A stretch of DNA of 64,000 nt from Epithemia pelagica (lineage: Eukaryota; Protista; Bacillariophyta), in assembly GCA_946965045.2 (NCBI GenBank), contig OX337229.1, positions 2,170,001 to 2,234,000 on the forward strand, written 5' to 3'. The notes below the pieces were generated by a model, which was not told the DNA's origin, made no database searches, and was given only the letters and a program-made list of their open reading frames with translations. Of this stretch, positions 1-17,330 are shown piece after piece. Both the position numbers and the translations under genes were made by a program. Numbering within the stretch: position 1 is the first letter of the stretch; every line of letters begins with the position of its first letter.

Positions 1-315
1 TTGTGTGATTTGTTGTGGAGTGATCCCGATGCTCCCAATTATTGTGGCGAATTTGACAATGCCGGCGGCATGATTACCATTGCACACGATTTAACCTGTT
101 CCTTTCAAATCCTCAAACCCAGTCATTCTCGTCACAACCCATCTCTGGCTGCAGCAACCACTGCAACATCGCGAGGAGAAGGAACGCGACGTCCAAATCC
201 CAGAGAGCATAAAAAGGACTCCACCAAGACCACTCCGACAAGCAGTAGCAGTGTCGAACCATCCTCCGTGTCCAGTCGAACCATGGGCAGTGGTCTTCTT
301 CGCAGCACCTTTTGA
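1..315 (+). pseudogene. 3' part of PP1 catalytic-subunit fragment (duplicate copy)
   Basis: [22 protein letters not shown]...CSFQILKP, identical to 11981-12295. Confidence 0.9.
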
Positions 316-945
316 GCACATTTACTTTAGGGGCGAGGGCTTTGTTTTGCATCCCCACCATTGGAGCAAGGTTATCGTGTCCCTGGAAAGCTTTGTCGAG
401 AGATGAAATTCATGGTTCATCCTGCGTCGAAAGCATCCCAGCTTGCGGTCGAAAAGGTTTCTGGGCGACCAGTTGGTGGTGGGCATCGAAGTGAATCCAC
501 CCCCTTGTGCGACCGTGCACTAGTGTCGGAAACGGGCAACTGCCCTTATTGCACAGACCGACAAGAAATTTGTATCCTGCTGGAGTAGAAACTCCACGGT
601 TTGTGCCGTGGTGGATGGACCTTTCGGTCCATTAGCAGCGATCATAATTTCTAATTTAAGCTCTGGGACCCTTTCGTAGTATTCTCCACGCCCAACTGCT
701 CCGTATTTCGTTGCGAAAAGGAATGCTTTGTATGCTTGATGCGACTTGGACTCCACTCGATGGTGAGATTGTCGTTCTCGATAGTGTTGCCAAGGCACCC
801 ACTCCGGAAGGCTCACTCCAAGTCGGAAGCACCACCATTCAGTGATCTTGATCTCCTACGAGCATAAACTCCCTTGTCTTTTTGGAGAGGGAAACAACAC
901 ATTCAAAATGATTGGAAGAAGCGATCATTCATTCCTATCGTGCCC

Positions 946-1299
946 TTAAAAGAATTGAAGGATGGCACCCAGTACCACCAGGCCACCGGACAACCAGGCA
1001 TAGTATTGTTTCCATTGGATGGCTTCTTGTTGCTGTTCTTGGACTTGTCGCATTTCTTGTAATGTTTGTTGTAATTGTTGTTGCAAGTTCTCTCGTTCTT
1101 GTTTGGCTTGTTCATTCCCCTGCAATACTTGTTGCTGTAACTGCCCTCGTTCCACCCGACCGGCTTCCTGGGCGTTTCGTATTTCGTCTTGCAAGGCTTG
1201 CTTTTCCTGGTTCAGTCGATGTTGTTGTTGTTGATACTGTTTCAATTGTTCGGATTGTTGTTGTTGTAATTGCGCTCGTTCTGTCCGACTTGTTTCCTG
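946..1299 (-). pseudogene. 3' half of Q-rich coiled-coil, tail-anchored protein gene (duplicate copy)
   Basis: Same as 12926-13279; ends in hydrophobic YYAWLSGGLVVLGAILQFF. Confidence 0.75.
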
Positions 1300-2351
1300 G
1301 GAGCTGGGGTAATCCTGAGCAGCTCGCTGTCATTCCAGGCAAAGTCTGACTACAAAGCGGAACACGACCAGAACGCTTAATCGATGTACTATAGCATAAA
1401 CTATGAACATGGACAAATAGAGAACTAATAGAAAGATTTAGGCCCACCACCACCCGGTTTTTGCAACCGCCCCAAATCATACTACATTAATTTACAGACG
1501 CACCATCTTGTGCTTCATGCCGCCTTCAAATTGTGCGTCCGGCTCATGTAGGGAAATCAACAACGCTCTGAATCCGTTTGTTGTGTCGTACATAAATTCG
1601 TAGTCGAACCTGCTTTGGACCATGAAAGGAAGAGAAAGAGAAAACTTTGACCTGACAAAGTCTGTTTCTCTTTTTAGCATCTGATTCATGGCGTCTTCCA
1701 AAGCAAGTTTCATTCGTAGGTTTTTCTCCTCGACATGCCACTCTCTGTGCATGTGTTGGGTTAGATAATGGATATGAGTTGCGTTGTCAGGCCAAATTAC
1801 CTTCACATGTACCTGTAGCTGGCTCGGATCCACTTCAATCAAGCAATTTGTTGTGTCTTCATGTGCAATACCTGTAGGCAACACCACCAAAATCACCAAA
1901 TGACGCTGTTTCTTGTCGTCGACCCACTGTGTCAAGACATGAGGAGGCTCCCAATTCCTCATCATGTCATTACCACTGTCTTCTTCATTCGTCTTTTTCC
2001 TCTTTTGTTGTAGTTGTACCTGTAGTGTCTCCTGTAATGGCATGGATCCTGCCGCCCTTTTCTTCACCATAGCATCGTCACTGACAACAGACTCAGGAGC
2101 GACCTTGGCAGCAACACCTGGTCATAAAAGACAATAAACCACAACAGGTAAGGACAGTGACTCAACAATCAAACAAACTGTGTACACTGGCACTTACCTT
2201 GTCCTTTGGACGACCCAAACAAAGAAGGAGCTGGTTTGAGATCTCCATCATTGGGGTTCCTTACCTTTCCATCCATAGATGGGGCCGTCTCACCACGACC
2301 CAACAACTCATGACCAGTCTCTCTCTCATGTTGATCCTTCAAGTGGACTTG
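1300..2351 (-). mobile_element. Truncated copy of the PHIS/Harbinger element (one TIR, ORF2 exon 2, intron, part of exon 1)
   Basis: CTG then GGAGCTGGGGTAATCC at 1297-1315; same as 13280-14331; cut at the hAT end. Confidence 0.9.
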
Positions 2352-2899
2352 TGAATTACAAATTACCCATTTTAGCACAATTCCAAGAATTATAATAAAA
2401 TTACCCTAACATCACCATTTCATCTTATCTTCCACAATCCCCATCGCATTTGAATAAATTACCTAATTATCTTCCATATGTTTCCCACCATAGAGCAAAT
2501 TACTATATTCAATTCTAGTATCCTAGCTCCATGTAATTGAGACCCTTATTCCATTCCCCCCCTCTCACGATCCATATAATTAGTCCCCAATTACACATCA
2601 TACCCCCCATTGAATTATCAAATCACTCCCTATCCACATGTATTACTGTAATTAGGTCGAATAATAATGAACTTCTATAGAGTTTTCTTTGCTCATTCGT
2701 TACAACAACAGATGAGGAATGGTGAATGAAAGAACACACCATGTACCATGCACCTCCACCACCACCACTCATTTGCGTTTGTGCAGATCTGCAGATCCGT
2801 TTCTCTCCCTCTCTTCAACAACACTCAGACTCTTTTTCCCCTCCATCGTCATACTTCTTTCTATTTGTCGCAAGTTATTATTGATACACCTATTGCAAC

Positions 2900-5800
2900 A
2901 TGGCTCCCCCTTCATTACCAAAGAAGAAACCCAAACCACCACCGAAGAAGAAACAGTCCTCCAGCACCAAGAAGAAAAGCGCTCCCAACAAAAAGAAGCC
3001 TTCTGCTTTAGAGGCTCAACAAGCTTTGATCGAGAAGGATTTTGGTGAGGATGTACAGGCAACCAAAGACGTGAACCAAATGGAGAAAGATGTTCTCCCT
3101 GTGTACCCAAACATTCCTACTCTCTTTTTTGATACCAAATCCTCTTCACAATATTGGGATTGGTCAATTCATATCAACTGGATTGAATTCGAGAAACTCG
3201 TCTCAAACAATAGAGAAGAGCTCGAGTCTTCTTTATACCCCGGATACCACAAAATAATCAAACTCTTCGATTCCTTAGTTGTCATCGATGAAGAGAAGAC
3301 CAAGACTTTGTCGCCTCCTGATCTGAGAGACAAGTTTTGGAAAATGTCCCGACGTGTTCTCATCTGTCCTAGATGTTTCAAGAACAAGTCACAACCACTA
3401 TGTGATTCGGTTATGGTCTGTTCACACGACAAGGCCTCTAACATCTACCAACACATCAAGGGCCATCACAAAGATCTCTATGACACTATACAGGCTGGTG
3501 GAAGTATATTGGGGTCGAATCCGAAACCCCCACCGTCCAACCAAAAGACGCTATCAGGATTCAAAGCGCCAGTCCAACCACGCAAACAAGCCACCAAAGA
3601 ACTCCATCGCCTCATGTATGAGTTCATCAATGACTGTTGTCTTCCAGCAGTAACAGTCGAGAAGCCCCAGTTCCGTGCTTTGTTGAAATATGCCTTTGAC
3701 AACGGTACCCAGTTAAAAGACTCTCGAGCTGAAGCCATGAGCCGACGGGAAATCACTCAGATACGGGTATCGTCGTACCAGGAGTTCATTGATGTTGTTT
3801 CCGATCTTGCACGAAAAGTCCGAGCGGAATACCGTCGCCTTTGTCAACATGAAATCCCATTCGCCACAGTGTGCCACGACATTTGGCAAGCACGGAAACA
3901 CGACGTGCTGGGAGTAACTATCATGTTATGCGACCCACGCAACTGCGTCATCTATCGCATACCAATCGGTCTGGCAGAAACACAAGGACATGCTGCTGTT
4001 GACGTTGCTGCCCTAACGCATTCTCTTCTTAAAGCCGTGGGATTTCGTCCATCTGACCTTTGCGCTACAGTGAACGATAATACTTCCGCAGCAGTGCTAG
4101 CGGGAAAGTACATTGTTGGAGAGCATGCCAGTAAGGGCAAATGTGACATGCACCGTGCAGAATTGGTGCTCAAGCATGCTACTGGTTTGATTCAGCGTTA
4201 TCAAAACAAGACTTTGATCGATTCCTTTCCAGCATTTGTCGACGCTTGGCAGGTTGCTAAGGAGTTTGCTTCGTACCTCTGTTCCAGAAAAGCATATCAC
4301 CGATTCGAAAAATTCAAGTCTGTTGTCTCATCTCTTGGTTGGGTTGTTGTGTCCATCCCACTCCCCAACGATACTCGAGTGGGCGGCTGTGTGTTATCCA
4401 TGGAGACGCTTCTCCGCATACTGTATCCAATGAAGGAGTATGCCTCTAAAGCCGTTGAGTCGGATCCTCACTTTATTACCCTCTTCAACAAGATCGACTG
4501 GACATTGATCTCGCAGTTTGAAGGAATTCTCCATCCGCTTCGTGGAGTCTTGCTATCATTGCAAACTGATGACCCAGGTTCTGGATCGGCTTCCCTCTTG
4601 GAAATCTATACATGTCGATTCCTTATTAAACACATGCGAACAGGTATTGTTGGTTGTCTTCCTACCAATCTAAACTATGGTCAACAGTGGGACGCCAGCA
4701 TCACCATGAAGGAGCTCGATGAAAAAAAAAGGAAAAAGGTCAAGTTTGAGAAACTCGAGAAAGGACCTCGAGACCTAATCCGTCGCATACTCAAGGAATA
4801 CGATTCATACTTAACCAACAAGGACGAAGACGGTCTCAAGGCCATGTGTGCCAACCCCCTACTTGTGAATGTGTATGAAGAACATCTCGTCGAATTAGGA
4901 GCCTACAATGAAGATGAAGTAAAAGAAATAAGGCGGCTTTTTATCAAAGACATGGTGAAACAATTCACAAACAAGAAAGTCTCACAAATTGGTGCTTTGA
5001 TTGCCAAACAAGGAAACATGGCAGTGTCGAACAAGAACACCGCTACCGATACTACAAGTACGGCTCGTACGGCTCATGCAACGGCTTCCAACGCGACCAC
5101 GGGCGGGAAAGCCACTGCAAACGACGATTCCGATTCCGATTCTGATACCTATGTTCCACTCAATCCATTTGAGAAAATTCGAAGATCGAGGGAGTTGAAA
5201 AAACAGGCACGACTACAATTGAGTGGGACGGCTGTAATGGGCGGTCAAGAAGCAGAAATCGTTGCGGCATTGCGGAAAGTATGCACTGAAGCATTCGACG
5301 AATACCGTTCCATGTGTTCGAAGAAGGTGGAACATCAGTGGGATACTGTTATACAGAATTATCCCACAAAGCAGTTGGATAAAGATTCAGAGAAGTGGAC
5401 AGACGATGAGACAAACGAGTTCCTCCAATACTGTTCGGAACACAACTTCCTGAAGGTTGGCAAATACTTTGACGTGATGAAATGGTGGGATGATAACAAA
5501 GGTGATTATCCCTATGTCTTTGTAAGCGCAATCATCTGGCTCACTAAGCCCGCTACAAACGCCTTCCAGGAACGCATCTTCTCTTTGGGAACGTGGTTTT
5601 CACAAAATAAGCTGATGTCTAATCTCTTGAAAAAACATTTCGAAATGAGGACCATGGACTGCCTAACAAGGGAGCTGAGACGAGAAATCCAGCAACGGGA
5701 ATCCGAATTGGAAGCTGCAAAGAGGAACAAGACAAAAGGCTCCACTCTGTCCAAGTATGTTGATAAGCGTCGTCTAGAAAGTGAGAAAGGTGATGGTACT

Positions 5801-6937
5801 GCTGACAAAGAGATTGAAGTTGAGGAAAAAGCAGATGAGACCTTGAATGAAGAAAGTATCTCTCAACAAAAGACGGCCGTTAGGACAAAGTCCATTCAAA
5901 CTGCCACTGAAGGTTTTAAGAAATATGTTCGAGCGGCAAAGTTCCCTGAGTCTGGTCCAATCTCCAAGGTTTCCGAAGATCCAACGTTAGAGATGACGTA
6001 TTATCCACTGTCGGATGACGACGAGCCAGATGGGAAACAAAGAGCCACTGCTAGTGGAAAGAAAGGACAGAGATCACCTACAACAGAGGAAGCCGATGGC
6101 AAACCACCGGCAATCAACAAGAAAGCAAACAATGAACAACCGGCAAAACCTAAGCAGTGGAACAGAGTCGTTTACACACAAGTCAGTGGTAAGCCGACAT
6201 TAGATGACGCGGACTCAGTCATCTATTCCTTAGGAACTGCTGAAAGTATGGATGAAGACAGTGACTGCGCTATGAATCAAGTTGTCCGTGACATAGTCAA
6301 AAATCCCGAACAGGTTGTTGTACTTGAGTCACTTGCAGGAAATTCTGACGAGATTCCCTTAGAAGTTGAGGTAGTGAATGAGTCAAAGGGGGGAGAGAAG
6401 AGAAAGACAGTCAGTTCGGATTCCAAACAATCTCGGAAGAAGCAAAAGGCAAAACAAACTACCATGACTGTAGCGGTACGGACATCGCCACCGAGGCGTG
6501 CAAAAGAAAAGTCACGCAATACACCCCCATCGGCTAAGCTAGTGCGTTCGGATGCAGCCAAAGGAAGTGGAAGTAAGAACAAAGCAAAAAAAACACGTGG
6601 AAAGTCAAAAGAAATCACCCAGTCAAAAGAAGACGCCCATAGTGTGGTCGAGGAAAACACACCCGGTGATCCACATAACGATCATGGAACGGATAAAGAC
6701 AACAACGATTCCGAAGACGACGAAGAGAGAAATGAAGATGGGCATGAAGGGGTGGATGTAGAAGAGATCAATGGCGACGAAGGTGATGAATGTGATAGTA
6801 ACAACAAGAATGATGTAGGAGAATCTATGGAGGAGCAGGAAGAAGACTTTGCCGTTGATGAGGGTGATGAGTGTGACGAGAGTGATGAGGAGGGTGATGA
6901 GGAGGGTGATGTGGAGGGTGACGATGATAACGAGTAA
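2900..6937 (+). CDS. hAT transposase, 1345 aa, intact
   Basis: BED-like CPRC...HIKGHH; VCHDIW (D), VNDNT (D), KCDMH (CxxH), PNDTRV, PATNAFQERIFS (E, dimerisation region); long acidic tail. Confidence 0.92.
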   Translation: MAPPSLPKKKPKPPPKKKQSSSTKKKSAPNKKKPSALEAQQALIEKDFGEDVQATKDVNQMEKDVLPVYPNIPTLFFDTKSSSQYWDWSIHINWIEFEKLVSNNREELESSLYPGYHKIIKLFDSLVVIDEEKTKTLSPPDLRDKFWKMSRRVLICPRCFKNKSQPLCDSVMVCSHDKASNIYQHIKGHHKDLYDTIQAGGSILGSNPKPPPSNQKTLSGFKAPVQPRKQATKELHRLMYEFINDCCLPAVTVEKPQFRALLKYAFDNGTQLKDSRAEAMSRREITQIRVSSYQEFIDVVSDLARKVRAEYRRLCQHEIPFATVCHDIWQARKHDVLGVTIMLCDPRNCVIYRIPIGLAETQGHAAVDVAALTHSLLKAVGFRPSDLCATVNDNTSAAVLAGKYIVGEHASKGKCDMHRAELVLKHATGLIQRYQNKTLIDSFPAFVDAWQVAKEFASYLCSRKAYHRFEKFKSVVSSLGWVVVSIPLPNDTRVGGCVLSMETLLRILYPMKEYASKAVESDPHFITLFNKIDWTLISQFEGILHPLRGVLLSLQTDDPGSGSASLLEIYTCRFLIKHMRTGIVGCLPTNLNYGQQWDASITMKELDEKKRKKVKFEKLEKGPRDLIRRILKEYDSYLTNKDEDGLKAMCANPLLVNVYEEHLVELGAYNEDEVKEIRRLFIKDMVKQFTNKKVSQIGALIAKQGNMAVSNKNTATDTTSTARTAHATASNATTGGKATANDDSDSDSDTYVPLNPFEKIRRSRELKKQARLQLSGTAVMGGQEAEIVAALRKVCTEAFDEYRSMCSKKVEHQWDTVIQNYPTKQLDKDSEKWTDDETNEFLQYCSEHNFLKVGKYFDVMKWWDDNKGDYPYVFVSAIIWLTKPATNAFQERIFSLGTWFSQNKLMSNLLKKHFEMRTMDCLTRELRREIQQRESELEAAKRNKTKGSTLSKYVDKRRLESEKGDGTADKEIEVEEKADETLNEESISQQKTAVRTKSIQTATEGFKKYVRAAKFPESGPISKVSEDPTLEMTYYPLSDDDEPDGKQRATASGKKGQRSPTTEEADGKPPAINKKANNEQPAKPKQWNRVVYTQVSGKPTLDDADSVIYSLGTAESMDEDSDCAMNQVVRDIVKNPEQVVVLESLAGNSDEIPLEVEVVNESKGGEKRKTVSSDSKQSRKKQKAKQTTMTVAVRTSPPRRAKEKSRNTPPSAKLVRSDAAKGSGSKNKAKKTRGKSKEITQSKEDAHSVVEENTPGDPHNDHGTDKDNNDSEDDEERNEDGHEGVDVEEINGDEGDECDSNNKNDVGESMEEQEEDFAVDEGDECDESDEEGDEEGDVEGDDDNE

Positions 6938-6991
6938 AATTGTAGGAGACCTACGAAAAACACATTACATGATACATGATTAGTTTACTAT

Positions 6992-8815
6992 CTATAATCG
7001 TTTATAACTACCGTATTTTCGAACGAGTTGTTGGACTCTGTCTTTTAATTCGTCACTCATTTCGGATTCGGCAATGATGGATTGCAGCTTGTGTCTATTC
7101 TCCGACACTGCACTTTGACTCAATGATCCAAACATTGGGTTAATAGACGACCAGTCAGCGGGATGAACCCATGATTCAAGATACTTGGATGTTAAATATC
7201 CACCTGTATCCTTCGGTACCCAACCCAAAAATTGGGTCCATCTGATCACGTGAATATCAGAAGGAATACCATCCGATCGACCAAATGATGACTCGACAAT
7301 AATCGCGGCGGTTTTGTATCCAATACCAGTGAGGGTAGACACTTCTTCGATCGTGATGTTGGAAGGAATTCGCCCACCATAATGCTTCATAAAGTAGTTT
7401 GCTGCATTAATTATTCGTTCGGTGTTCTGGTAATACCGACCCGGTTCCGAGAACATGGAGCAGATTGCATCAGGTCCGAATTGATCGCTGGCATCGATCA
7501 CAGCTCTTGAAGACGTGATCCCAAAAGAAAATATACGTGGCATGACTCGGCTAAGTTGAGAATCCGAAGTGCTCGATGACATACAGATAGTCATGAGGAA
7601 CATGAAGGCCCTGTCTGCCTGTCGGTCATCTTTTCGAATTGATGCGTCAATCCATTCTTCCCAATTGTCTCTTGGGGAGATTATTCCCATGGACTTGGCC
7701 TTTTCGTGGACAGACAACAGAGCAATAAGGTCGAACTTCCAAATCAAAGTCTGAATGGGACAGAAAATAGGAAGGTATGGAGGTTTGTCAAATACTTTTT
7801 TTAGCATTGGTGGGTCGTGAGGCATAATGCGGCGCTTTTCCTTTGTGCAATATTGGATTGTTTTTTTGGATCGCGACAACGATTTGAGAAAGTTGGACAT
7901 TTCTTGATTTCGGGCACGAGTTGGATATAAGTGATAAGCCTGTCGATGGATGGGGTGTGCTTTTCTGGGTGAATGTGAAGGAGATTTCCGCTTCAACAGT
8001 GTCTGATTTGGAGAATCTGATGGAGTATCGGTGGGAGTGTTAGATTCAGACGTTGGATCAGTGGTAATACAAGTTTCTGGAGACTCGGCGACTGCTTTTT
8101 GGGATGGTTTTGTAAGCAGGTTGGAATATTCATCCCTGATACATCGCAGGTACGGTGAAATGTTTCTTGGTATATACACAGAACATGATGATTTGGATAA
8201 AGAAGAACATGGTTCTAGGAAACAGTCGGTGGTCATCTTCTGTGGTGATTGCTTGCAATATATAGTTGTGTCTGTGGATAATATCCACGAAAGAGCCATT
8301 GACTGAATGGAAGATTGTAGTGGTTGTTCGTTTGCTTGCTCTTGTTCGATGGAGGAAAAGCATTCAAGGGACTGTTGATTGTGTACGAGTTTGAAATGTG
8401 GTTTGCAATGAACATGAAGGATGATTGTTGTACTACCAGGGGGTTGATCAACAAAATGGAAGTGTTGATGTTGCCAGGGACTGGAAACTTCTGTAGTATT
8501 GTAGTCTTCCAATATGGTTTGGAGAACGATTGCTGAAATCAATTCAACTTGCGCAGAAAATGAAAGCAGATCTACTCGGCAGTCATGAGAGGCAGATCCA
8601 GTGGTATTGTGGGTTTGGTAGGAGATATGACCGTCCACTGAGAGTAGCCAATTGATTGTTGCTTGTTCAATGGATTTCAGCATCTCAATTCTGGATGAGG
8701 TACTTGTTGTTGTACCAACGTTGGACCAGATGGCAAATAACTCCAAGTTGCAATGCATGATGTACATTGGTCTGCAGAAAGATTGGAATTGAAGTGATGG
8801 AAGTTCCTTGTTCAT
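6992..8815 (-). CDS. Endonuclease III-like HhH-GPD DNA glycosylase, 607 aa, with unknown N-terminal half
   Basis: FMFLMTICMSSSTSD, YGGRIPS..IEEVSTLTGIGYKTAAII (HhH with Lys), GIPSDIHVIRW (Asp); no C-terminal 4Fe-4S Cys cluster. Confidence 0.88.
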   Translation of the reverse strand: MNKELPSLQFQSFCRPMYIMHCNLELFAIWSNVGTTTSTSSRIEMLKSIEQATINWLLSVDGHISYQTHNTTGSASHDCRVDLLSFSAQVELISAIVLQTILEDYNTTEVSSPWQHQHFHFVDQPPGSTTIILHVHCKPHFKLVHNQQSLECFSSIEQEQANEQPLQSSIQSMALSWILSTDTTIYCKQSPQKMTTDCFLEPCSSLSKSSCSVYIPRNISPYLRCIRDEYSNLLTKPSQKAVAESPETCITTDPTSESNTPTDTPSDSPNQTLLKRKSPSHSPRKAHPIHRQAYHLYPTRARNQEMSNFLKSLSRSKKTIQYCTKEKRRIMPHDPPMLKKVFDKPPYLPIFCPIQTLIWKFDLIALLSVHEKAKSMGIISPRDNWEEWIDASIRKDDRQADRAFMFLMTICMSSSTSDSQLSRVMPRIFSFGITSSRAVIDASDQFGPDAICSMFSEPGRYYQNTERIINAANYFMKHYGGRIPSNITIEEVSTLTGIGYKTAAIIVESSFGRSDGIPSDIHVIRWTQFLGWVPKDTGGYLTSKYLESWVHPADWSSINPMFGSLSQSAVSENRHKLQSIIAESEMSDELKDRVQQLVRKYGSYKRL

Positions 8816-9611
8816 TATTGGTTATTGTGAAGAAGTCAACAGGACAAGCTGTAGAGGTACAACGAACAACGAATGAACACAGAACACATGACCTCTGGGA
8901 GCACGAATTCTGAGCACAGAGTACTGAGCACTACGCACTAATCAACACTGTGAACTGCATGGAAGCGTAAAAAAATATGATAATTTGGTAATTAATTGGG
9001 TAATAGAATGGAAATTTATTCAATTACTCATTGGTGTGGTAATTTAATAAATCTTAAAAATGAATTCTAGGTGGTGCGTTGAATATTGTTATTGAAACGG
9101 ACTAATTCCAAGGCAAAGTGTGTGAGAAGGAAATTATGGTAATTTTTATAAATTAATTCAAACGGACAAGGAATTGGGAAAATTACAATAATTCAATTCA
9201 AAGACAATTGAGTGGATTTGTTAATTCAATAATTATATTCTAAATTATATTAGGGCTAAATTAATTTTGATATTAAATTAAAGAGAGAAAACAAGGAGTA
9301 ATAAATTATAAAATTCCATTATTAAGTGATTGTGCGGTAATTCACAACCCTGATTCGCTTGCGGACGGTTGTCCACAACTCGCTTCTAGCCGCTCTTTGG
9401 TCGTCGATCGACTGGGACTCCTCGTCCTGATCCAACAATTGGACCGCTTCGCGGTAAAGAGTCGACTAAGTTCAGTATCTGTTATCTGTGCAGTGGAATC
9501 CGTGACTGAACGAACCAGAAGTACTGAAATATGTAGACTACTTAGGAGTGAGAATAAAGAGAGACGGTGCAACTGAACTTGCTCTGTACTCCTGGGAGTA
9601 GTTATGGAATT

Positions 9612-10413
9612 CTAGTATCCACAGGTTTCGGAATGTGAAAATGTTGTCACTTATATTCCACGCCATACGATATCTGATGATGCAATGCAATTTGGGTGCG
9701 GCAACTTTGATGGTATAGTTGTTCCTGTTCGACTTGAGGCTATTGTACTACAAGATTTGTCGCCATTTGTTTCGCGTGAGAACAACTCTAGTATCCAAAG
9801 GTTTTGGAATGTGAAACTGTTGTCACTTATAGTCCACGCCATAAGGTATCTGATAATGCAATGCAATTTGGGTTCGGCAACTTTGATGGTATACTTGTTC
9901 CTGTTCGACTTGAGGCTATTGTACTACAAGATTTGTCGCCATTTGTTTCGAGTGAGAACAACTCTAGTATCCACAGGTTTTGGAATGTGAAAATGTTGTC
10001 ACTTATAGTCCACGCCATAAGGTATCTGATAATGCAATGCAATTTGGGTGCGGCAACTTTGATGGTATACTTGTTCCTGTTCGACTTGAGGCTATTGTAC
10101 TATAAGATTTGTCGCCATTTGTTTCGCGTGAGAACAACTCTAGTATCCAAAGGTTTTGGAATGTGAAACTGTTGTCACTTATAGTCCACGCCATAAGGTA
10201 TCTGATGATGCAATGCAATTTGGGTTCGGCAACTTTGATGGTATACTTGTTCCTGTTCGACTTGAGGCTATTGTACTACAAGATTTGTCGCCATTTGTTT
10301 CGTGTGAGAACAACTCTAGTATCCAAAGGTTTTGGAATGTGAAACTGTTGTCACTTATAGTCCATGCCATAAGGCATCTGATAATGCAATGCAATTTGGG
10401 TGCGGCAACTTTG
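9612..10413. repeat. Tandem array, 176-bp unit x ~4.55
   Basis: CTAGTATCCA starts at 9612, 9788, 9964, 10140, 10316; units differ by scattered substitutions. Confidence 0.97.
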
Positions 10414-10864
10414 TGTTAGAATTCTCACCGTCTATGGTGGTTAGATTCTACATCTCATCGATTCCCCATGTCACATAGCCTCGTGCTATCGCATCATGCC
10501 ATCTAGCTTCGAGCTATGTTCCCTAGCTTCGCGCTATATCGACCTATATTTCTTCACAAATCATGAAAAGTGAGAATAGATTGACGAACTCACTCTCAAG
10601 ACTAAACTGGGTCGTGCGGTATTACAACGGACGTAAATTTGGCCGTTGCTCGGACATTATACTAACGCCCTAAGCGTACGCGCCCAAAATCATCGAGCGT
10701 GCCCAAGCGACATCCGAGCGCTGTCGGCATCTATCCGACCCAACGGTCTAAGTATCCCAAGCACGACACACGATCACGCAAGACCATATTTCCATTCCCA
10801 CAATCTCCAAATTGTCAACAAGCTGCGCGCCATGAAAACAACTATGCCAATCCAAAGCAAGAGC
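10414..10864 (+). mobile_element. Decayed copia LTR/leader fragment
   Basis: Starts TGTTAG; GATTGACGAACTCA at 10579-10592 matches 10/14 of the PBS of the other two copia elements; followed by CAAGACTAAAC, similar to CAAGACTTAAAC in the copia leader near 18185. Confidence 0.4.
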
Positions 10865-11421
10865 TGTTGACCCTGTATATGTTATCCGTCCACATATACA
10901 TGTCATATACATCACATGAATCGACTCCAACTATTCCAAACCTGTTGCCGCCAAGAACCCTACCCCCAAGCAGGGGTGAGTCCAGGTCGCACATAGGTCG
11001 TACCTAAAGGTACATCTGTATACTCACCCCCTTGGCTCGACCACCCAAAATTGGCGGTTTTCCGACATTGATACAAATTGCATTTTACCTCAACGCATCC
11101 ACCACGGTGCCAAACTAATGAGGTCGATTGCATCCGCCGTGAAGGCTGTCCAACCGCACCCAAGCCCTTGTAAGCTTTCCCATCCTACCGACGACACTTC
11201 TGCCTACTCGGTGTTGCCTTCAATTGTTCTTTCACGAGCATGGACAACCAGCAAAACACCACATTTCGCGACAACAACGAGGGAGATGAAGATCCATCAA
11301 CCGACTTCCCAAACCGCTCTATTACGTCCCTTCCGCCATCTCATTCTCTCCCCATAATACCGAGCGGCCTTCCAAAGGTCCAGACCTTCTGCACCAGGCA
11401 CGAACCGGAACAACCATAAAC

Positions 11422-11450
11422 CAAGACAAGACAAGACAAGACAAGACAAG
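11422..11450 (+). repeat. (CAAGA)n microsatellite, ~6 units
   Basis: Read directly. Confidence 0.9.
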
Positions 11451-11658
11451 GATGGAAGGTTGTGGTTGTCTCCATTGATAGTGCCATCTGATACAGCTTT
11501 TATCTCTTCTGTCTGTGTGTCTCCTCGGTGAACGAAAGATAGCTTGAATCTTTCCTTTTGTTTCGTGATCTGAAATTGGTGCAGCGGCGGTCATCTCGTC
11601 ATTGGACACGCTTTCCCAACAACACCATGTCTTCCTTTCGTTCGGCCTCAATTCCCAG

Positions 11659-12295
11659 TGTCGATCGCGGCAAACAATCGATTGAAACCATTTGTTTGCT
11701 CTTGGCCTACAAGATCCAATATCCACTCAACTTTTTTATACTACGAGGCAATCACGAAAGTGCCGGTATCAATCGCATTTATGGATTTTACGACGAATGC
11801 AAACGGCGGTATTCCATCAAATTGTGGAAAGTCTTTTCCGATGTCTTTAATTGTCTGCCCGCCGCCGCTGTGATTGACGAACGAATCTTGTGCATGCATG
11901 GCGGGTTGTCTCCTCAATTGCAAGAATTGGACCAGATCGCCGACCTTGAACGACCCTGCGATGTTCCCGATTCCGGATTGTTGTGTGATTTGTTGTGGAG
12001 TGATCCCGATGCTCCCAATTATTGTGGCGAATTTGACAATGCCGGCGGCATGATTACCATTGCACACGATTTAACCTGTTCCTTTCAAATCCTCAAACCC
12101 AGTCATTCTCGTCACAACCCATCTCTGGCTGCAGCAACCACTGCAACATCGCGAGGAGAAGGAACGCGACGTCCAAATCCCAGAGAGCATAAAAAGGACT
12201 CCACCAAGACCACTCCGACAAGCAGTAGCAGTGTCGAACCATCCTCCGTGTCCAGTCGAACCATGGGCAGTGGTCTTCTTCGCAGCACCTTTTGA
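11659..12295 (+). pseudogene. PP1: Ser/Thr protein phosphatase 1 catalytic-subunit fragment, 5'-truncated and internally deleted
   Basis: [65 protein letters not shown]; GDIHG exon absent; putative acceptor TTCCCAG at 11652-11658. Confidence 0.92.
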
Positions 12296-12439
12296 GCACA
12301 TTTACTTTAGGGGCGAGGGCTTTGTTTTGCATCCCCACCATTGGAGCAAGGTTATCGTGTCCCTGGAAAGCTTTGTCGAGAGATGAAATTCATGGTTCAT
12401 CCTGCGTCGAAAGCATCCCAGCTTGCGGTCGAAAAGGTT

Positions 12440-12800
12440 TCTGGGCGACCAGTTGGTGGTGGGCATCGAAGTGAATCCACCCCCTTGTGCGACCGTGCAC
12501 TAGTGTCGGAAACGGGCAACTGCCCTTATTGCACAGACCGACAAGAAATTTGTATCCTGCTGGAGTAGAAACTCCACGGTTTGTGCCGTGGTGGATGGAC
12601 CTTTCGGTCCATTAGCAGCGATCATAATTTCTAATTTAAGCTCTGGGACCCTTTCGTAGTATTCTCCACGCCCAACTGCTCCGTATTTCGTTGCGAAAAG
12701 GAATGCTTTGTATGCTTGATGCGACTTGGACTCCACTCGATGGTGAGATTGTCGTTCTCGATAGTGTTGCCAAGGCACCCACTCCGGAAGGCTCACTCCA
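12440..12800 (-). pseudogene. Possible degenerate ankyrin-like gene fragment
   Basis: TVEFLLQQDTNFLSVC then, after a frameshift, GQLPV; weak resemblance only. Confidence 0.25.
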
Positions 12801-13471
12801 AGTCGGAAGCACCACCATTCAGTGATCTTGATCTCCTACGAGCATAAACTCCCTTGTCTTTTTGGAGAGGGAAACAACACATTCAAAATGATTGGAAGAA
12901 GCGATCATTCATTCCTATCGTGCCCTTAAAAGAATTGAAGGATGGCACCCAGTACCACCAGGCCACCGGACAACCAGGCATAGTATTGTTTCCATTGGAT
13001 GGCTTCTTGTTGCTGTTCTTGGACTTGTCGCATTTCTTGTAATGTTTGTTGTAATTGTTGTTGCAAGTTCTCTCGTTCTTGTTTGGCTTGTTCATTCCCC
13101 TGCAATACTTGTTGCTGTAACTGCCCTCGTTCCACCCGACCGGCTTCCTGGGCGTTTCGTATTTCGTCTTGCAAGGCTTGCTTTTCCTGGTTCAGTCGAT
13201 GTTGTTGTTGTTGATACTGTTTCAATTGTTCGGATTGTTGTTGTTGTAATTGCGCTCGTTCTGTCCGACTTGTTTCCTGGGAGCTGGGGTAATCCTGAGC
13301 AGCTCGCTGTCATTCCAGGCAAAGTCTGACTACAAAGCGGAACACGACCAGAACGCTTAATCGATGTACTATAGCATAAACTATGAACATGGACAAATAG
13401 AGAACTAATAGAAAGATTTAGGCCCACCACCACCCGGTTTTTGCAACCGCCCCAAATCATACTACATTAAT

Positions 13472-14616
13472 TTACAGACGCACCATCTTGTGCTTCATGC
13501 CGCCTTCAAATTGTGCGTCCGGCTCATGTAGGGAAATCAACAACGCTCTGAATCCGTTTGTTGTGTCGTACATAAATTCGTAGTCGAACCTGCTTTGGAC
13601 CATGAAAGGAAGAGAAAGAGAAAACTTTGACCTGACAAAGTCTGTTTCTCTTTTTAGCATCTGATTCATGGCGTCTTCCAAAGCAAGTTTCATTCGTAGG
13701 TTTTTCTCCTCGACATGCCACTCTCTGTGCATGTGTTGGGTTAGATAATGGATATGAGTTGCGTTGTCAGGCCAAATTACCTTCACATGTACCTGTAGCT
13801 GGCTCGGATCCACTTCAATCAAGCAATTTGTTGTGTCTTCATGTGCAATACCTGTAGGCAACACCACCAAAATCACCAAATGACGCTGTTTCTTGTCGTC
13901 GACCCACTGTGTCAAGACATGAGGAGGCTCCCAATTCCTCATCATGTCATTACCACTGTCTTCTTCATTCGTCTTTTTCCTCTTTTGTTGTAGTTGTACC
14001 TGTAGTGTCTCCTGTAATGGCATGGATCCTGCCGCCCTTTTCTTCACCATAGCATCGTCACTGACAACAGACTCAGGAGCGACCTTGGCAGCAACACCTG
14101 GTCATAAAAGACAATAAACCACAACAGGTAAGGACAGTGACTCAACAATCAAACAAACTGTGTACACTGGCACTTACCTTGTCCTTTGGACGACCCAAAC
14201 AAAGAAGGAGCTGGTTTGAGATCTCCATCATTGGGGTTCCTTACCTTTCCATCCATAGATGGGGCCGTCTCACCACGACCCAACAACTCATGACCAGTCT
14301 CTCTCTCATGTTGATCCTTCAAGTGGACTTGGTATTTTCTTTTGGCTTTGTTGAGTGCCGACCTGAATGATTCCAATTTGTACTTTTGGAAAACAGCGTG
14401 TTCCAACCACACAGATTTGGGTGTGGCGCTCTCCAGAATCAAGCCTTCTGACACGATTTTGTCAAGGAATTCGGCATCTGTTGACTTTGAATTCCACGAA
14501 AGTAGGGCACCCTCGCCCAAACTGTTGCGGCCAGACCTGGTCATCGGAGTATAGGTACTATTAGTACGTAAAACAGAAGCGCGAGGGAGTGCGAAACCAG
14601 ACTGGTCTGTTCGCAC
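13472..14616 (-). CDS. PHIS accessory ORF2, two exons (14616-14178, 14097-13472), ~330-354 aa; helical DNA-binding-like N-terminus plus HSP20/alpha-crystallin-like C-terminus
   Basis: 80-nt GTAAGT...CAG intron (14177-14098, phase 1) joins the 155-aa and 192-aa ORFs in frame; the domain calls are by pattern only. Confidence 0.75.
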
Positions 14617-14737
14617 GAAAACTAATTATGACCCTAAAAACAGTTCACCAAAATCCGGACTGGGTCGGTTTTCATCATGGACTCCATTTTTCAATCGAGG
14701 AGGCCATGCCTAATTTGGCTCCAATTCTGAAAGTAGT

Positions 14738-14960
14738 GCGACCCACGTATTGCCCTTACCTTGGGTCAACCGTGGGTCGTTCGTCCAAGTGAATTGGGCA
14801 CTTATAAGGTGTCCTGGGTCGGTTTTAAAAAAACGAGCTGGGTCGATTTTTTCGAGCCAGGTAGTTTTTTCAAAACCGACCCAGGACACTTTCTAGTGGT
14901 TCAAATGATATAATCAAGCGACCCACAGTTAACCCAAGATAAGGGCAATATGTGGGTCGC
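14738..14960. promoter_or_regulatory. Nested palindrome between the divergent PHIS genes
   Basis: 43-bp arms 14738-14780 / 14918-14960 (5 mismatches); perfect 18-bp inner IR 14809-14826 / 14872-14889; repeated GGGTCG. Function inferred from position only. Confidence 0.6.
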
Positions 14961-15300
14961 TTAAGATGTAGAAAGTAATAGGATGTTGGCGAGGTAGGGC
15001 CATTCAGAAATTCCAGTTTTTGAATGAAAACGATTTTTGAATCGATTTCTGCACCGTTCCAGGCCGGTTCCAATGACCGGACACGAATTCGAATTGGTCA
15101 CTATATGTAGAACAGTACAAAGTTTAGTGTCGCTGCTCAACTGACCAGCCAATCAAATGAACGTGATGAAATTCCAAAAAACCTGTTCCAATGAACTGAC
15201 AGTACTACACACAGACAGACCGAGATCAAAGTAAAGGTGTGGTCAGCATCGCGACACACACTGAGCAAACATAAATTTTCCAAAGCGGTTTTCTCCCACC

Positions 15301-16239
15301 ATGTTGGTGACACAACGAACATTCATCAACTTGGCTCTGCCAATGCTTGGTAGAGCAAGACACTCACACACACTTGATTTCTCACGTGCTTTTCGTTCTT
15401 ACTTTGGAATGTCTCCTTTGCTCTGTGTTCATGTGTGGGATGAACTGGACAGTTCATTGCCCAAAGGTGCATCGCCTCGTCATTTGTTGTGGACACTGGC
15501 TTTTCTGAAAGTCTATGCTACAGAGGATGTTATGGTCTCAATAGCCAAAACAACGAGGAAGACCTACAGGAAGTGGGTCAAAGTGTTTGTAAATTTGTTG
15601 TATAGTGGTCTTAATTATGTAAGTACATGGCCCTACATGAATTTGCCATGAAGTCGTCCTCCTCATATCTGACCATTGCTGTTGTTCTTATAACAGGTTG
15701 TATGGGACAATAGGTTTGATTGTTGTGTACCTGGACAGGTCTGTTTCATTAGTTTGGATGGTACTGACTTCAGGATTTTGGAGCCGTCACCTTTTGATCC
15801 AAAATGGTACTCGCACAAGTTTAAGGGAGCAGGTGTGAGGTATGAGGTGGGAATCTGCCTGAAAACTGGCTGGATAGTGTGGTGGAATGGTGCATTCCCT
15901 TGTGGCGCTTGGCCAGACCTACGGATTGCCAGAGACTGGCTTGTTCAAGAGCTACTACCGAATGAGAAAGTGATTGCTGATGGTGGTTACAACGATTCTG
16001 GATGCTACTTTGTCACACCTACTGGAAGAAATGACTATCAAGACAAGATGATGGCTGATGCCAGGGCGAGACATGAAACTGTCAACAATTTACTGAAACA
16101 TTACAATATCTTAAAGGAGAAATACAGAGGAGATCTGGATGGGCATCACAAGGTGTTTGGAGCAGTGGTGAATCTGGTTCAGATGAAGATTGAAAATGGT
16201 GAGGCGAAAGTGTTTCAGATCGAAGTGGAAGATGACTAG
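15301..16239 (+). CDS. PHIS/Harbinger DDE transposase, two exons (15301-15618, 15697-16239)
   Basis: 78-nt GTAAGT...CAG phase-0 intron; HLLWTLAFLK helix region; LDGTD, IADGGY, RARHETVN (D-D-E). Confidence 0.92.
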
Positions 16240-17330
16240 CAGTACAAATATGTAGCGGTTATGAACCGGGTGGTGGTGGGTTTTAATAGTACTAGCAGTC
16301 AGTATATCATCTTTTGTCGCTAGAGTGTTCTTTATACAGAAAAAGCGTTCGGTAACTCCTATAGGTCACAGTCAGTATCTGACTGGTAAGGTAGCGACCT
16401 GCTCAGGATTACCCCATCTCCCTGAGCCTTTCGCATTTCCTCTTGCAAGTTTTGCTTTTCTAGAACGAGTAGCGCTTGTTGCTGTCGATGCTGTTCCAAT
16501 TGATCCGAAACTTGTTGTTGCAATTTCGTTCGTTCCGTCTGACCGGTTTCCCGAACCGTTTGCATTTCGTCGTGCAAGCCTTTCTTTTCCTGAACCAGTC
16601 GTTCCTACCTGACAAGATTGCTTGAGTGTTGTTGTTGTGCCTGTCGGTTTGCCAAAGGAGTTTCGTAGGAGAAATTCGCAACTATAGCATCAATACCACC
16701 TGCGGCAACGGAGGAAGGAGGGCGAAACAACGTGATACCGGGGGTTGAGGAGGAATGGGCCTGGGATGTAGGAGTGTTGTTGGTTTTGGCGATGCCAGTA
16801 TCAAAACCTGCTCTTGCAGATGCCACCGGCTGACTTGGGTCCACCTGAGCTTCATAGGCTTGTCGGGTTTGCTTCTGAGAAAGCTTCCGACGTTTATGTC
16901 AAGAAGAAGACATGATGTAGGTCGATTTGATACCTCTGCACCTCCACCACCGTAATGGATGCGTGGAGGTAGAATGAAATTTGTATCAATGTCGAGAGCG
17001 ACCAGGTCGAGCCAAGGGGGTGAGTATACGGATGCACATCGTGCATCCAATCACGCGTGACTGACTCACCCCTGCTTGGGGGTACCAAGAACCTATGACA
17101 CATGACCCTTGGCAGGACCGAACATTTCACGTAGACCTATCGTAGTAATCAACACACAATCTAACAATATCACCATTTATCACATCTTCTTTTGTGTCCC
17201 GACTATCCTTTTGATAGACTACGATTTGCTTGCTTCTCTGACCCTGAGAAGCTTGTATCGGTTGGTGACCTACCTGATTGTCTGCTCTACCGAGCATCAA
17301 TGTCCCTACGATTCAGAAAGAATTGTAACA

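Follow-up and report, generated by a model that had tools for sequence, protein, structure and literature searches.

A Pack-type element of an apparently AcademH-like transposon family carries captured host gene fragments in the diatom Epithemia pelagica

In the diatom Epithemia pelagica, a stretch of 64,000 nucleotides of contig OX337229.1 (assembly GCA_946965045.2, positions 2,170,001 to 2,234,000 of the forward strand; hereafter the window, whose coordinates are used throughout) contains at 10961-17084 an element with long terminal inverted repeats (TIRs) and pieces of host genes in its interior, which raises the question of which transposon family mobilizes it and how the host DNA came to lie inside it. 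An earlier note on this DNA described the element as Pack-MULE-like (MULE, Mutator-like element). The analysis presented here shows that it is a Pack-type element that does not belong to the Pack-MULEs, and it is probably a helper-dependent deletion derivative of an AcademH-like cut-and-paste family, in which DNA of contig 4 was captured in one event. Loci compared across the genome are designated by L-numbers, and C1, C4, C5, C7 and C17 stand for contigs 1, 4, 5, 7 and 17. The element and its borders are composed as follows.

10951..10960, no strand: left target site duplication, 10 bp, CCAAGAACCC, of which 9/10 positions match 17085-17094
10961..11109, plus strand: left TIR, 149 nt, with the terminal 22-mer TACCCCCAAGCAGGGGTGAGTC
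11110..11399, plus strand: helicase-side subterminal region, 84% identical to L031:8309-7870
11400..11658, no strand: remnant of an older foreign segment from an L036-type backbone, matching contig 1 at about 1603139-1603382 with 85-88% identity
11659..12295, plus strand: captured 3' half of a PP1 catalytic-subunit gene, through the stop, matching L059:5137-5490 (99.4%) and 5662-5947 (98.9%)
12296..12925, no strand: captured intergenic spacer, 630 bp, colinear with L059:5948-6577
12926..13279, minus strand: captured ExoVII-like 3' end (coiled-coil tail), part one, colinear with L059:6578-6931
13280..16421, plus strand: nested PIF/Harbinger-type element, 3,142 bp, with a DDE_Tnp_4 open reading frame (ORF)
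16425..16601, minus strand: captured ExoVII-like 3' end, part two, and end of the captured block, 96% identical to L059:6932-7108
16602..16947, minus strand: transposase-side subterminal region, 77% identical to L031:949-499 and 99% to L033
16948..17084, minus strand: right TIR, 137 nt, in inverted-repeat alignment with the left arm
17085..17094, no strand: right target site duplication, CCAAGAACCT

The TIR arms, estimated at about 140-150 bp in the earlier note, measure 149 and 137 nt and align with 115 matches in 158 columns; their terminal 22 nt are perfectly complementary (22/22), and conservation is high in two more blocks (31/33 and 42/47). The flanking duplication, read there as 9/10 bp, is 10 bp long with a 9/10 match, and because other copies of the family mostly show 10-bp duplications, it is a 10-bp duplication that acquired one later substitution. 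Among 14 other family copies, 12 have perfect 10-bp duplications, one has a duplication of 9 bp and one a 9/10 match, which makes 10 bp the family norm. A genome-wide search for the tip, which the note had proposed, yielded 134 matches with at most two mismatches in the 60.5-Mb, 23-contig genome, as opposed to none for the reversed control; this signal is far beyond chance. Each TIR also repeats the terminal motif, imperfectly and in inverted orientation, about 55 nt inside the tip (ACTCACCCC...TTGG; 11017-11042 and 17005-17030); this repeat may be a second transposase-binding site.

As the note had stated, the element lacks a transposase of its own: ORF comparison revealed no transposase gene in it, only short 5' remnants of the two genes of the family. 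On the left, 11110-11399 includes the start of the family's RecQ-like helicase gene (ATG at 11240 on the plus strand, about the first 50-60 codons), the predicted N-terminus of which (MDNQQNT...) matches the helicase ORF of L031. On the right, the minus-strand ORF at 16605-16844 is an N-terminal remnant of the family's gene for a protein of 1,732 aa. The parts shared with the family are confined to 10961-11658 and 16601-17085; the termini are 97-99% identical to those of L033, and the backbone is of the L036/L033 type.

Pairs of tips elsewhere in the genome define several size classes, namely elements of 7.8 kb (L031, L032, L034 and the decayed L035), elements of about 1.8 kb, variants of 0.8-2.7 kb and miniatures of 112-118 bp. 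The intact 7.8-kb elements contain two convergent ORFs, of 1,732 and 698 aa, and no other genes, and the autonomous copies L031 and L032 have the same tip as the window element and subtermini homologous to its own. The smaller protein, represented by ORFs of 698 and 682 aa, carries DEAD and Helicase_C domains, and its best solved relatives are RecQ1, BLM, bacterial RecQ, RECQ5 and WRN. The sole Pfam match of the larger protein is DUF6589, for which the literature searched yielded one incidental mention only. In a second subfamily, represented by L034, the TIRs are about 75% identical; both ORFs have stayed open at 51% and 59% amino-acid identity, which indicates selection on both. Full-length relatives of the large protein, 62-68% identical to that of L031, occur at no fewer than 19 genomic loci (at least; most full-length DUF6589 loci have uninterrupted frames of 1,630-1,805 aa), and this transposase population is unusually diverse and apparently live. 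L031 (C4:2025227-2033035) and L032 (C4:3401457-3409265), each of 7,809 bp, lie in opposite orientations, share an identical transposase core (100%) and both lack a target duplication. The sequences flanking one copy reappear, exchanged and reverse-complemented, around the other, a pattern characteristic either of recombination between this pair that inverted 1.376 Mb or of an assembly mis-orientation.

The large protein was examined further by homology and structure prediction. A HMMER search found 494 relatives, and DUF6589 was matched by 25/38 sequences in an alignment of the query core with 37 homologues; a language-model search for look-alikes likewise led to DUF6589 clusters, most frequent in Cnidaria, Basidiomycota and Mucoromycota. 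An AlphaFold model of residues 601-1330, built on the alignment, reached a mean local confidence (pLDDT) of 89.8 and a global score (pTM) of 0.89. The transposase profile had no match among the sequences of the PDB, and Foldseek with the model found nothing significant there; an exhaustive structural aligner placed Hermes (Z 8.7, 285 residues) and the P element transposase (Z 7.6, 357 residues) at the top, followed by Tn5, about 15 retroviral integrases, ISCth4, RAG1 and Transib, that is, essentially only DDE recombinases with an RNase H fold. The core matches extend from model residue ~163 to ~701, so that a large helical insertion would interrupt the RNase H-like fold. D772 and E1271 are the sole residues at their positions in the 30 sequences covering them, while D1015 is invariant in 38/38; in the predicted model, D772 is located on the first core strand, D1015 just after the fourth strand and E1271 in the C-terminal helix. 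Taken together, these data lend moderate-to-good support to the DUF6589 protein as the putative transposase of the family, with a DDE/RNase H-like fold. Its pairing with the helicase appears to be old, because a distant homologue (P0137, 26% identity) combines DUF6589, DEAD and Helicase_C in one polypeptide.

The published account of the Academ superfamily (PMC10045372) distinguishes AcademH, with duplications of 9 or 10 bp and a helicase, from AcademX, with duplications of 3 or 4 bp and a nuclease. The family studied here encodes a helicase beside its transposase and generates 9-10-bp duplications, and, like AcademH, it is a TIR-bearing cut-and-paste family with a large DDE transposase and a superfamily-2 helicase. 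Clusters of its homologues are commonest in Basidiomycota, Mucoromycota and Cnidaria, as published for AcademH, which is reported from Basidiomycota, Ascomycota and Mucoromycota (PMC10799480). Since the large DDE transposase, the helicase, the 9-10-bp duplications and the taxon range all fit, the family is best described as AcademH-like, by hallmarks and not by phylogeny; as regards the Academ clade itself, the observations are a predicted DDE/RNase H-like fold and the conserved triad D772, D1015 and E1271, and the Pfam label of the domain is DUF6589 only. The host is, however, a diatom, whereas the lineage has been described from animals and fungi, and no paper linking Academ to diatoms was found in the literature searched. 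To our knowledge, Academ has no described non-autonomous derivatives with recurrent fragments of host genes. Duplications of Kolobok transposons are the 4-bp TTAA. KolobokH and Kolobok-1_CCri are also DDE lineages that carry a RecQ helicase, which in KolobokH follows the transposase domain within a single polypeptide (PMC9587614); in contrast to Kolobok, the duplications observed here are 9-10 bp long, vary in sequence and include no TTAA, and membership in KolobokH was rejected on this ground.

The origin of the interior can be traced precisely. A genome search showed that, with the nested Harbinger element set aside, the interior from 11659 on corresponds to a single continuous stretch of 1,972 bp on contig 4 (C4:1417136-1419107): 11659-12012 is colinear with C4:1417136-1417489 (99.4% identity), 12010-13279 with C4:1417661-1418930 (98.9%) and 16421-16601 with C4:1418927-1419107 (96.1%). 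Captured block and source differ by 23 mismatches in 1,798 nt (98.7% identity), with no small indels. The source locus, L059, holds two intact convergent genes, a PP1 gene with a 505-aa ORF containing STPPase_N and Metallophos, which is the parental gene that the note had suggested looking for, and an ExoVII-large-subunit-like gene with a 789-aa ORF (PF02601, E = 3.9e-22) ending in a coiled-coil tail. In the window, the PP1 fragment still matches Metallophos (E = 9e-23, Pfam), and the ExoVII-like portion corresponds to the last 177 codons of its source gene. Because the element holds truncated copies of genes that are intact at the source, the direction of copying is fixed, from the host locus on contig 4 to the element. 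No TIR or element remnant was detected at or near that locus.

The plus-strand PP1 fragment and the minus-strand coiled-coil pieces recognized in the note are thus real, whereas its picture of separate captures of unrelated genes gives way to a single block. Its ankyrin-like relic did not hold up: the ORF in question (12500-12796, minus strand) has no Pfam match and lies within the captured intergenic spacer. The coiled-coil ORFs and the backbone ORFs had no meaningful Pfam matches either. At 12012/12013, the element skips 171 bp (57 PP1 codons) present at the source; because the edges of this stretch, which is coding, are a 3-nt TGC microhomology and not GT-AG, the skip is a slip or deletion and not a lost intron. 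Both captured gene fragments are in sense orientation behind the two inward-facing gene starts of the element, an arrangement in which chimeric transcripts running into the PP1 and ExoVII-like fragments are plausible.

The element is built in layers. Its segment at 11400-11658 is common to L036, L033 and L040 and absent from the autonomous L031; it belongs to the foreign middle of the L036-type backbone (L036:1039-1817), which is missing in the autonomous element and aligns with contig 1 near 1.60 Mb as four pieces of 85-96% identity. The block from contig 4 took the place of about 625 bp of this backbone (L036:988-1612), with junctions that lie deep within it, 698 and 483 nt from the tips, that show microhomology of 0 nt on the left and 1 nt on the right, and that carry no inner TIR remnants. 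The nested element, already recognized in the note as a PHIS, is flanked by a CTG duplication (13277-13279 and 16422-16424) and belongs to a family with at least 35 genome copies of 97-100% identity; it was inserted after the capture, because the contig 4 source shows the empty site (tttcCTGagcc). The order of events is old cargo, contig 4 capture, Harbinger insertion and local duplication.

In the history that we consider probable, the element would be mobilized in trans by the 1,732-aa DDE transposase of its family, acting on the shared TIRs with a 10-bp staggered cut at the target. It would descend from a progenitor of 1.8 kb and of the L036/L033 type in which the older foreign segment was present beforehand. 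A double-strand break or excision gap within the element may have been faultily repaired, such that about 625 bp of the middle was lost and a contiguous 1,972-bp copy of contig 4 was gained in a single event. Repair synthesis could have left the element as a template and copied the ectopic locus, or a filler fragment could have been ligated in; in either case, the ends would have been rejoined with 0-1 nt of microhomology, and 171 bp would have been skipped at the 3-nt microhomology. A young Harbinger element subsequently inserted into the captured block, and still later the left 5 kb of the locus would have been tandemly duplicated around a hAT element. Internal-deletion derivatives of maize Ac/Ds and Mu with filler DNA from abortive gap repair are a close parallel, in that ectopic DNA takes the place of the middle, microhomology at the junctions is slight or absent, and there are skips at short repeats; the difference is that the filler here is a single-copy genic segment of 1-2 kb derived from a different chromosome and that such acquisitions recur in the family.

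This recurrence is documented by further copies. L040 (2,195 bp), flanked by a perfect 10-bp duplication, shares its backbone with the window element; in L040, a segment of 1,136 bp with 99% identity to C17:2658545-2659681 has taken the place of about 740 bp of that backbone. The left breakpoints of L040 (L040:1190-1200) and the window element (11654-11658) fall 5 nt apart in the backbone (L036:1608-1613), and the right breakpoints about 120 nt apart; the two captures are independent, and neither can be derived from the other. Three non-autonomous subfamilies each contain a different older foreign segment (83-96% identity to contigs 1, 7 and 5): that of the L036 type matches contig 1, that of the L037 type (L037, L038, L042, L039 and L012) matches contig 7 (89-93%) and that of the L011 type (L011, L028 and L041) matches contig 5 (83-87%). 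The corresponding regions are C1:1601419-1603382, C7:1417267-1418408 and C5:1567613-1569020. Each of these backbones is present in at least three copies, and the duplications differ among all copies whose flanks were read; since there are several copies, each with a different duplication, the backbones have transposed after capture. In total, five separable acquisitions are found in the family, two of them recent, with exact source loci and junctions defined to the base.

The older cargos match their sources in 2-4 pieces and lack stretches of 105-693 bp present there; the frame data on these gaps given below, together with the PP1 skip, favour discontinuous copying or later deletions. At L037:1172-2164 (minus strand) and the equivalent position of L038, the N-terminal part of the transposase continues in frame into captured sequence, and the resulting chimeric ORF of 330-350 aa is open in both elements, with no convincing Pfam domain. 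L033 was considered as a third recent capture and rejected, because its 5.4-kb interior is a fragment of another multi-copy transposable element and not host cargo. This insert (L033:1890-7260; C1:4611934-4617304) contains a 602-aa RING-finger ORF and a 388-aa ORF and is part of a repeat present in at least 20 copies of 97-99% identity; other copies are accompanied by a 300-bp terminal piece about 13 kb away, and the full element behind the insert may be about 18 kb long.

Several points weigh against the reading of the window element as an AcademH-like derivative that captured host DNA through faulty repair. The name AcademH is given by hallmarks, and the best fold match, at Z 8.7, is only moderately above the background of the aligner. 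The contig 4 cargo is represented by one full insertion and its segmental duplicate only, and the sources of the older cargos on contigs 1, 7 and 5 are only probably host genes. Moreover, junction microhomology of 0-1 nt fits template switching and end-joining of a free fragment alike.

It is conceivable that capture is a built-in property of the family, in which a cut at a pseudo-end or helicase-driven release of the template would set a preferred switch point to host DNA. RecQ-like helicases are the enzyme class that dissolves D-loops. The idea derives from the proximity of the two left breakpoints (5 nt), from their location 9-14 nt from a tip look-alike (TCCTCCCAAG in the unbroken backbone to the right of the shared breakpoint, which matches the tip TACCCCCAAG at 8/10 positions) and from the RecQ-like helicase encoded by the family. 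The shared left breakpoint may be a capture hotspot; as a general property of the family, however, such a preferred switch point seems rather unlikely to us. A hairpin at the breakpoint was also considered and rejected (z = -1.24).

Faulty repair within one element should also be weighed against a composite origin, in which insertion of a family copy on each side of the contig 4 segment would have created a unit mobilized as a whole through its outer ends, with later loss of the inner ones. A model of two flanking elements has been proposed for Pack-CACTA and described for plant Pack-type elements (PMC13317346), and it would readily account for a captured block that is a single contiguous genomic stretch. 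Nevertheless, the source locus is devoid of TIRs and element remnants, the deep junctions retain no inner ends, and the backbone that was kept is colinear with one progenitor of the L036/L033 type, as expected from simple replacement of the middle; L040, furthermore, exhibits the same replacement geometry. A composite origin is hence quite improbable.

Membership in the Pack-MULEs proper would require that a Mutator-superfamily transposase mobilizes the element and that the DUF6589 protein is a divergent MULE transposase or an accessory protein. Long TIRs and 9-10-bp duplications are indeed typical of MULEs, and an active diatom MULE with TIRs of about 200 bp and 9-bp duplications has been published (bioRxiv 10.1101/2023.01.02.522487). 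However, models for MULE, Transposase_mut, SWIM, hAT, P, CACTA and KDZ found no match among the 38 aligned sequences, the 1,732-aa protein included, at E values up to 1. Intact elements hold only the DUF6589 DDE protein and the RecQ-like helicase, a D, D, E triad is conserved in the former, which is therefore the likely transposase, and the combination of a helicase with 9-10-bp duplications is a hallmark of AcademH (PMC10045372). Mobilization by a Mutator transposase is thus very improbable. The note had suggested looking for an autonomous MULE with the same TIR and had allowed that a non-MULE partner would make this a different pack-type element; no MULE/MuDR domain was found in the partner, and it is this latter alternative that is borne out. 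What remains of the Pack-MULE comparison is the Pack-type character, that is, a non-autonomous element with host fragments, an intact source elsewhere and repeated capture.

An RNA-mediated route, by which the foreign segments would have entered as complementary DNA (cDNA) of host transcripts, could explain why the interiors of the L036, L037 and L011 types match their sources in 2-4 pieces that are 105-693 bp apart at the source. Against this, the block in the window spans an intergenic spacer and two convergent 3' ends and therefore cannot represent one mRNA, and the 171-bp skip is, as noted, coding and bounded by TGC. The contig 7 gaps (105 and 141 bp) are multiples of three inside a 607-aa open frame, the contig 1 gap region with its 94-nt matched piece lies inside a 460-aa open frame, and L028 keeps 512 bp at the gap of L011, which points to later deletion. 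Loss of introns thus seems unlikely for the older cargos, and for the family as a whole we give RNA-mediated capture very little chance.

That the backbone/PP1 junctions or the whole arrangement are a repeat mis-join of the assembly is barely credible, even in a repeat-rich region where 5 kb is duplicated around a hAT element with 99.94% identity, given the matching target duplications on unique flanks, the presence of the junction sequence in both duplicate copies, the independent L040 with the same architecture and a perfect 10-bp duplication, and the high contiguity of the assembly (23 contigs for 60.5 Mb).

Compared with plant Pack-MULEs (Jiang et al. 2004) and other Pack-TYPE elements (PMC8903248), the window element and its relatives are likewise non-autonomous, have long TIRs and 9-10-bp duplications, and carry DNA-level copies of host gene fragments from an intact source locus; repeated independent and layered acquisitions, chimeric ORFs and, for the backbones of the L036, L037 and L011 types, later transposition of cargo-bearing elements are shared as well. 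In terms of what defines a Pack-MULE, the TIRs and duplications, the lack of a transposase and the host fragments are all present, and a shared MuDR/MULE transposase is absent. The differences from plant Pack-MULEs are that the autonomous partner is not a Mutator element, that the host is a stramenopile alga and that the several genes represented in the window element are one contiguous block over two convergent genes, not separate captures. No Pack-type elements of diatoms were found in the literature searched, and the authors of the diatom MULE study state that their own element is not a Pack-MULE (bioRxiv 10.1101/2023.01.02.522487).

Nearly all descriptions of Pack-type capture come from land plants and concern Mutator, CACTA and a few further superfamilies, whereas the present case concerns a diatom and a little-studied, helicase-carrying Academ lineage, and it extends the host range of AcademH-like elements to a diatom. 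The family provides a clean system for studying how cut-and-paste elements acquire host DNA, and also whether chimeric ORFs, antisense RNAs or small RNAs from the cargo affect the source genes, here those for PP1 and the ExoVII-like protein.

The surroundings of the element have themselves been rearranged. A direct duplication of 4,979 bp with 99.94% identity comprises window positions 1-2351 (together with 2.6 kb upstream of the window) and 9353-14331, and a hAT-like element of 7.0 kb (2352-9352) sits precisely where the two copies meet (X-hAT-X); in the upstream copy, the Academ-type element is only partial and breaks off at base 1062 of the Harbinger element. This configuration suggests a tandem direct duplication brought about by the transposon (through alternative or sister-chromatid hAT transposition) or else an artefact of assembly. 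About 550 bp to the left of the insertion site there is a tandem array (9608-10413) of about 4.5 copies of a 176-bp unit, 95-98% identical, which is present again in the upstream duplicate.

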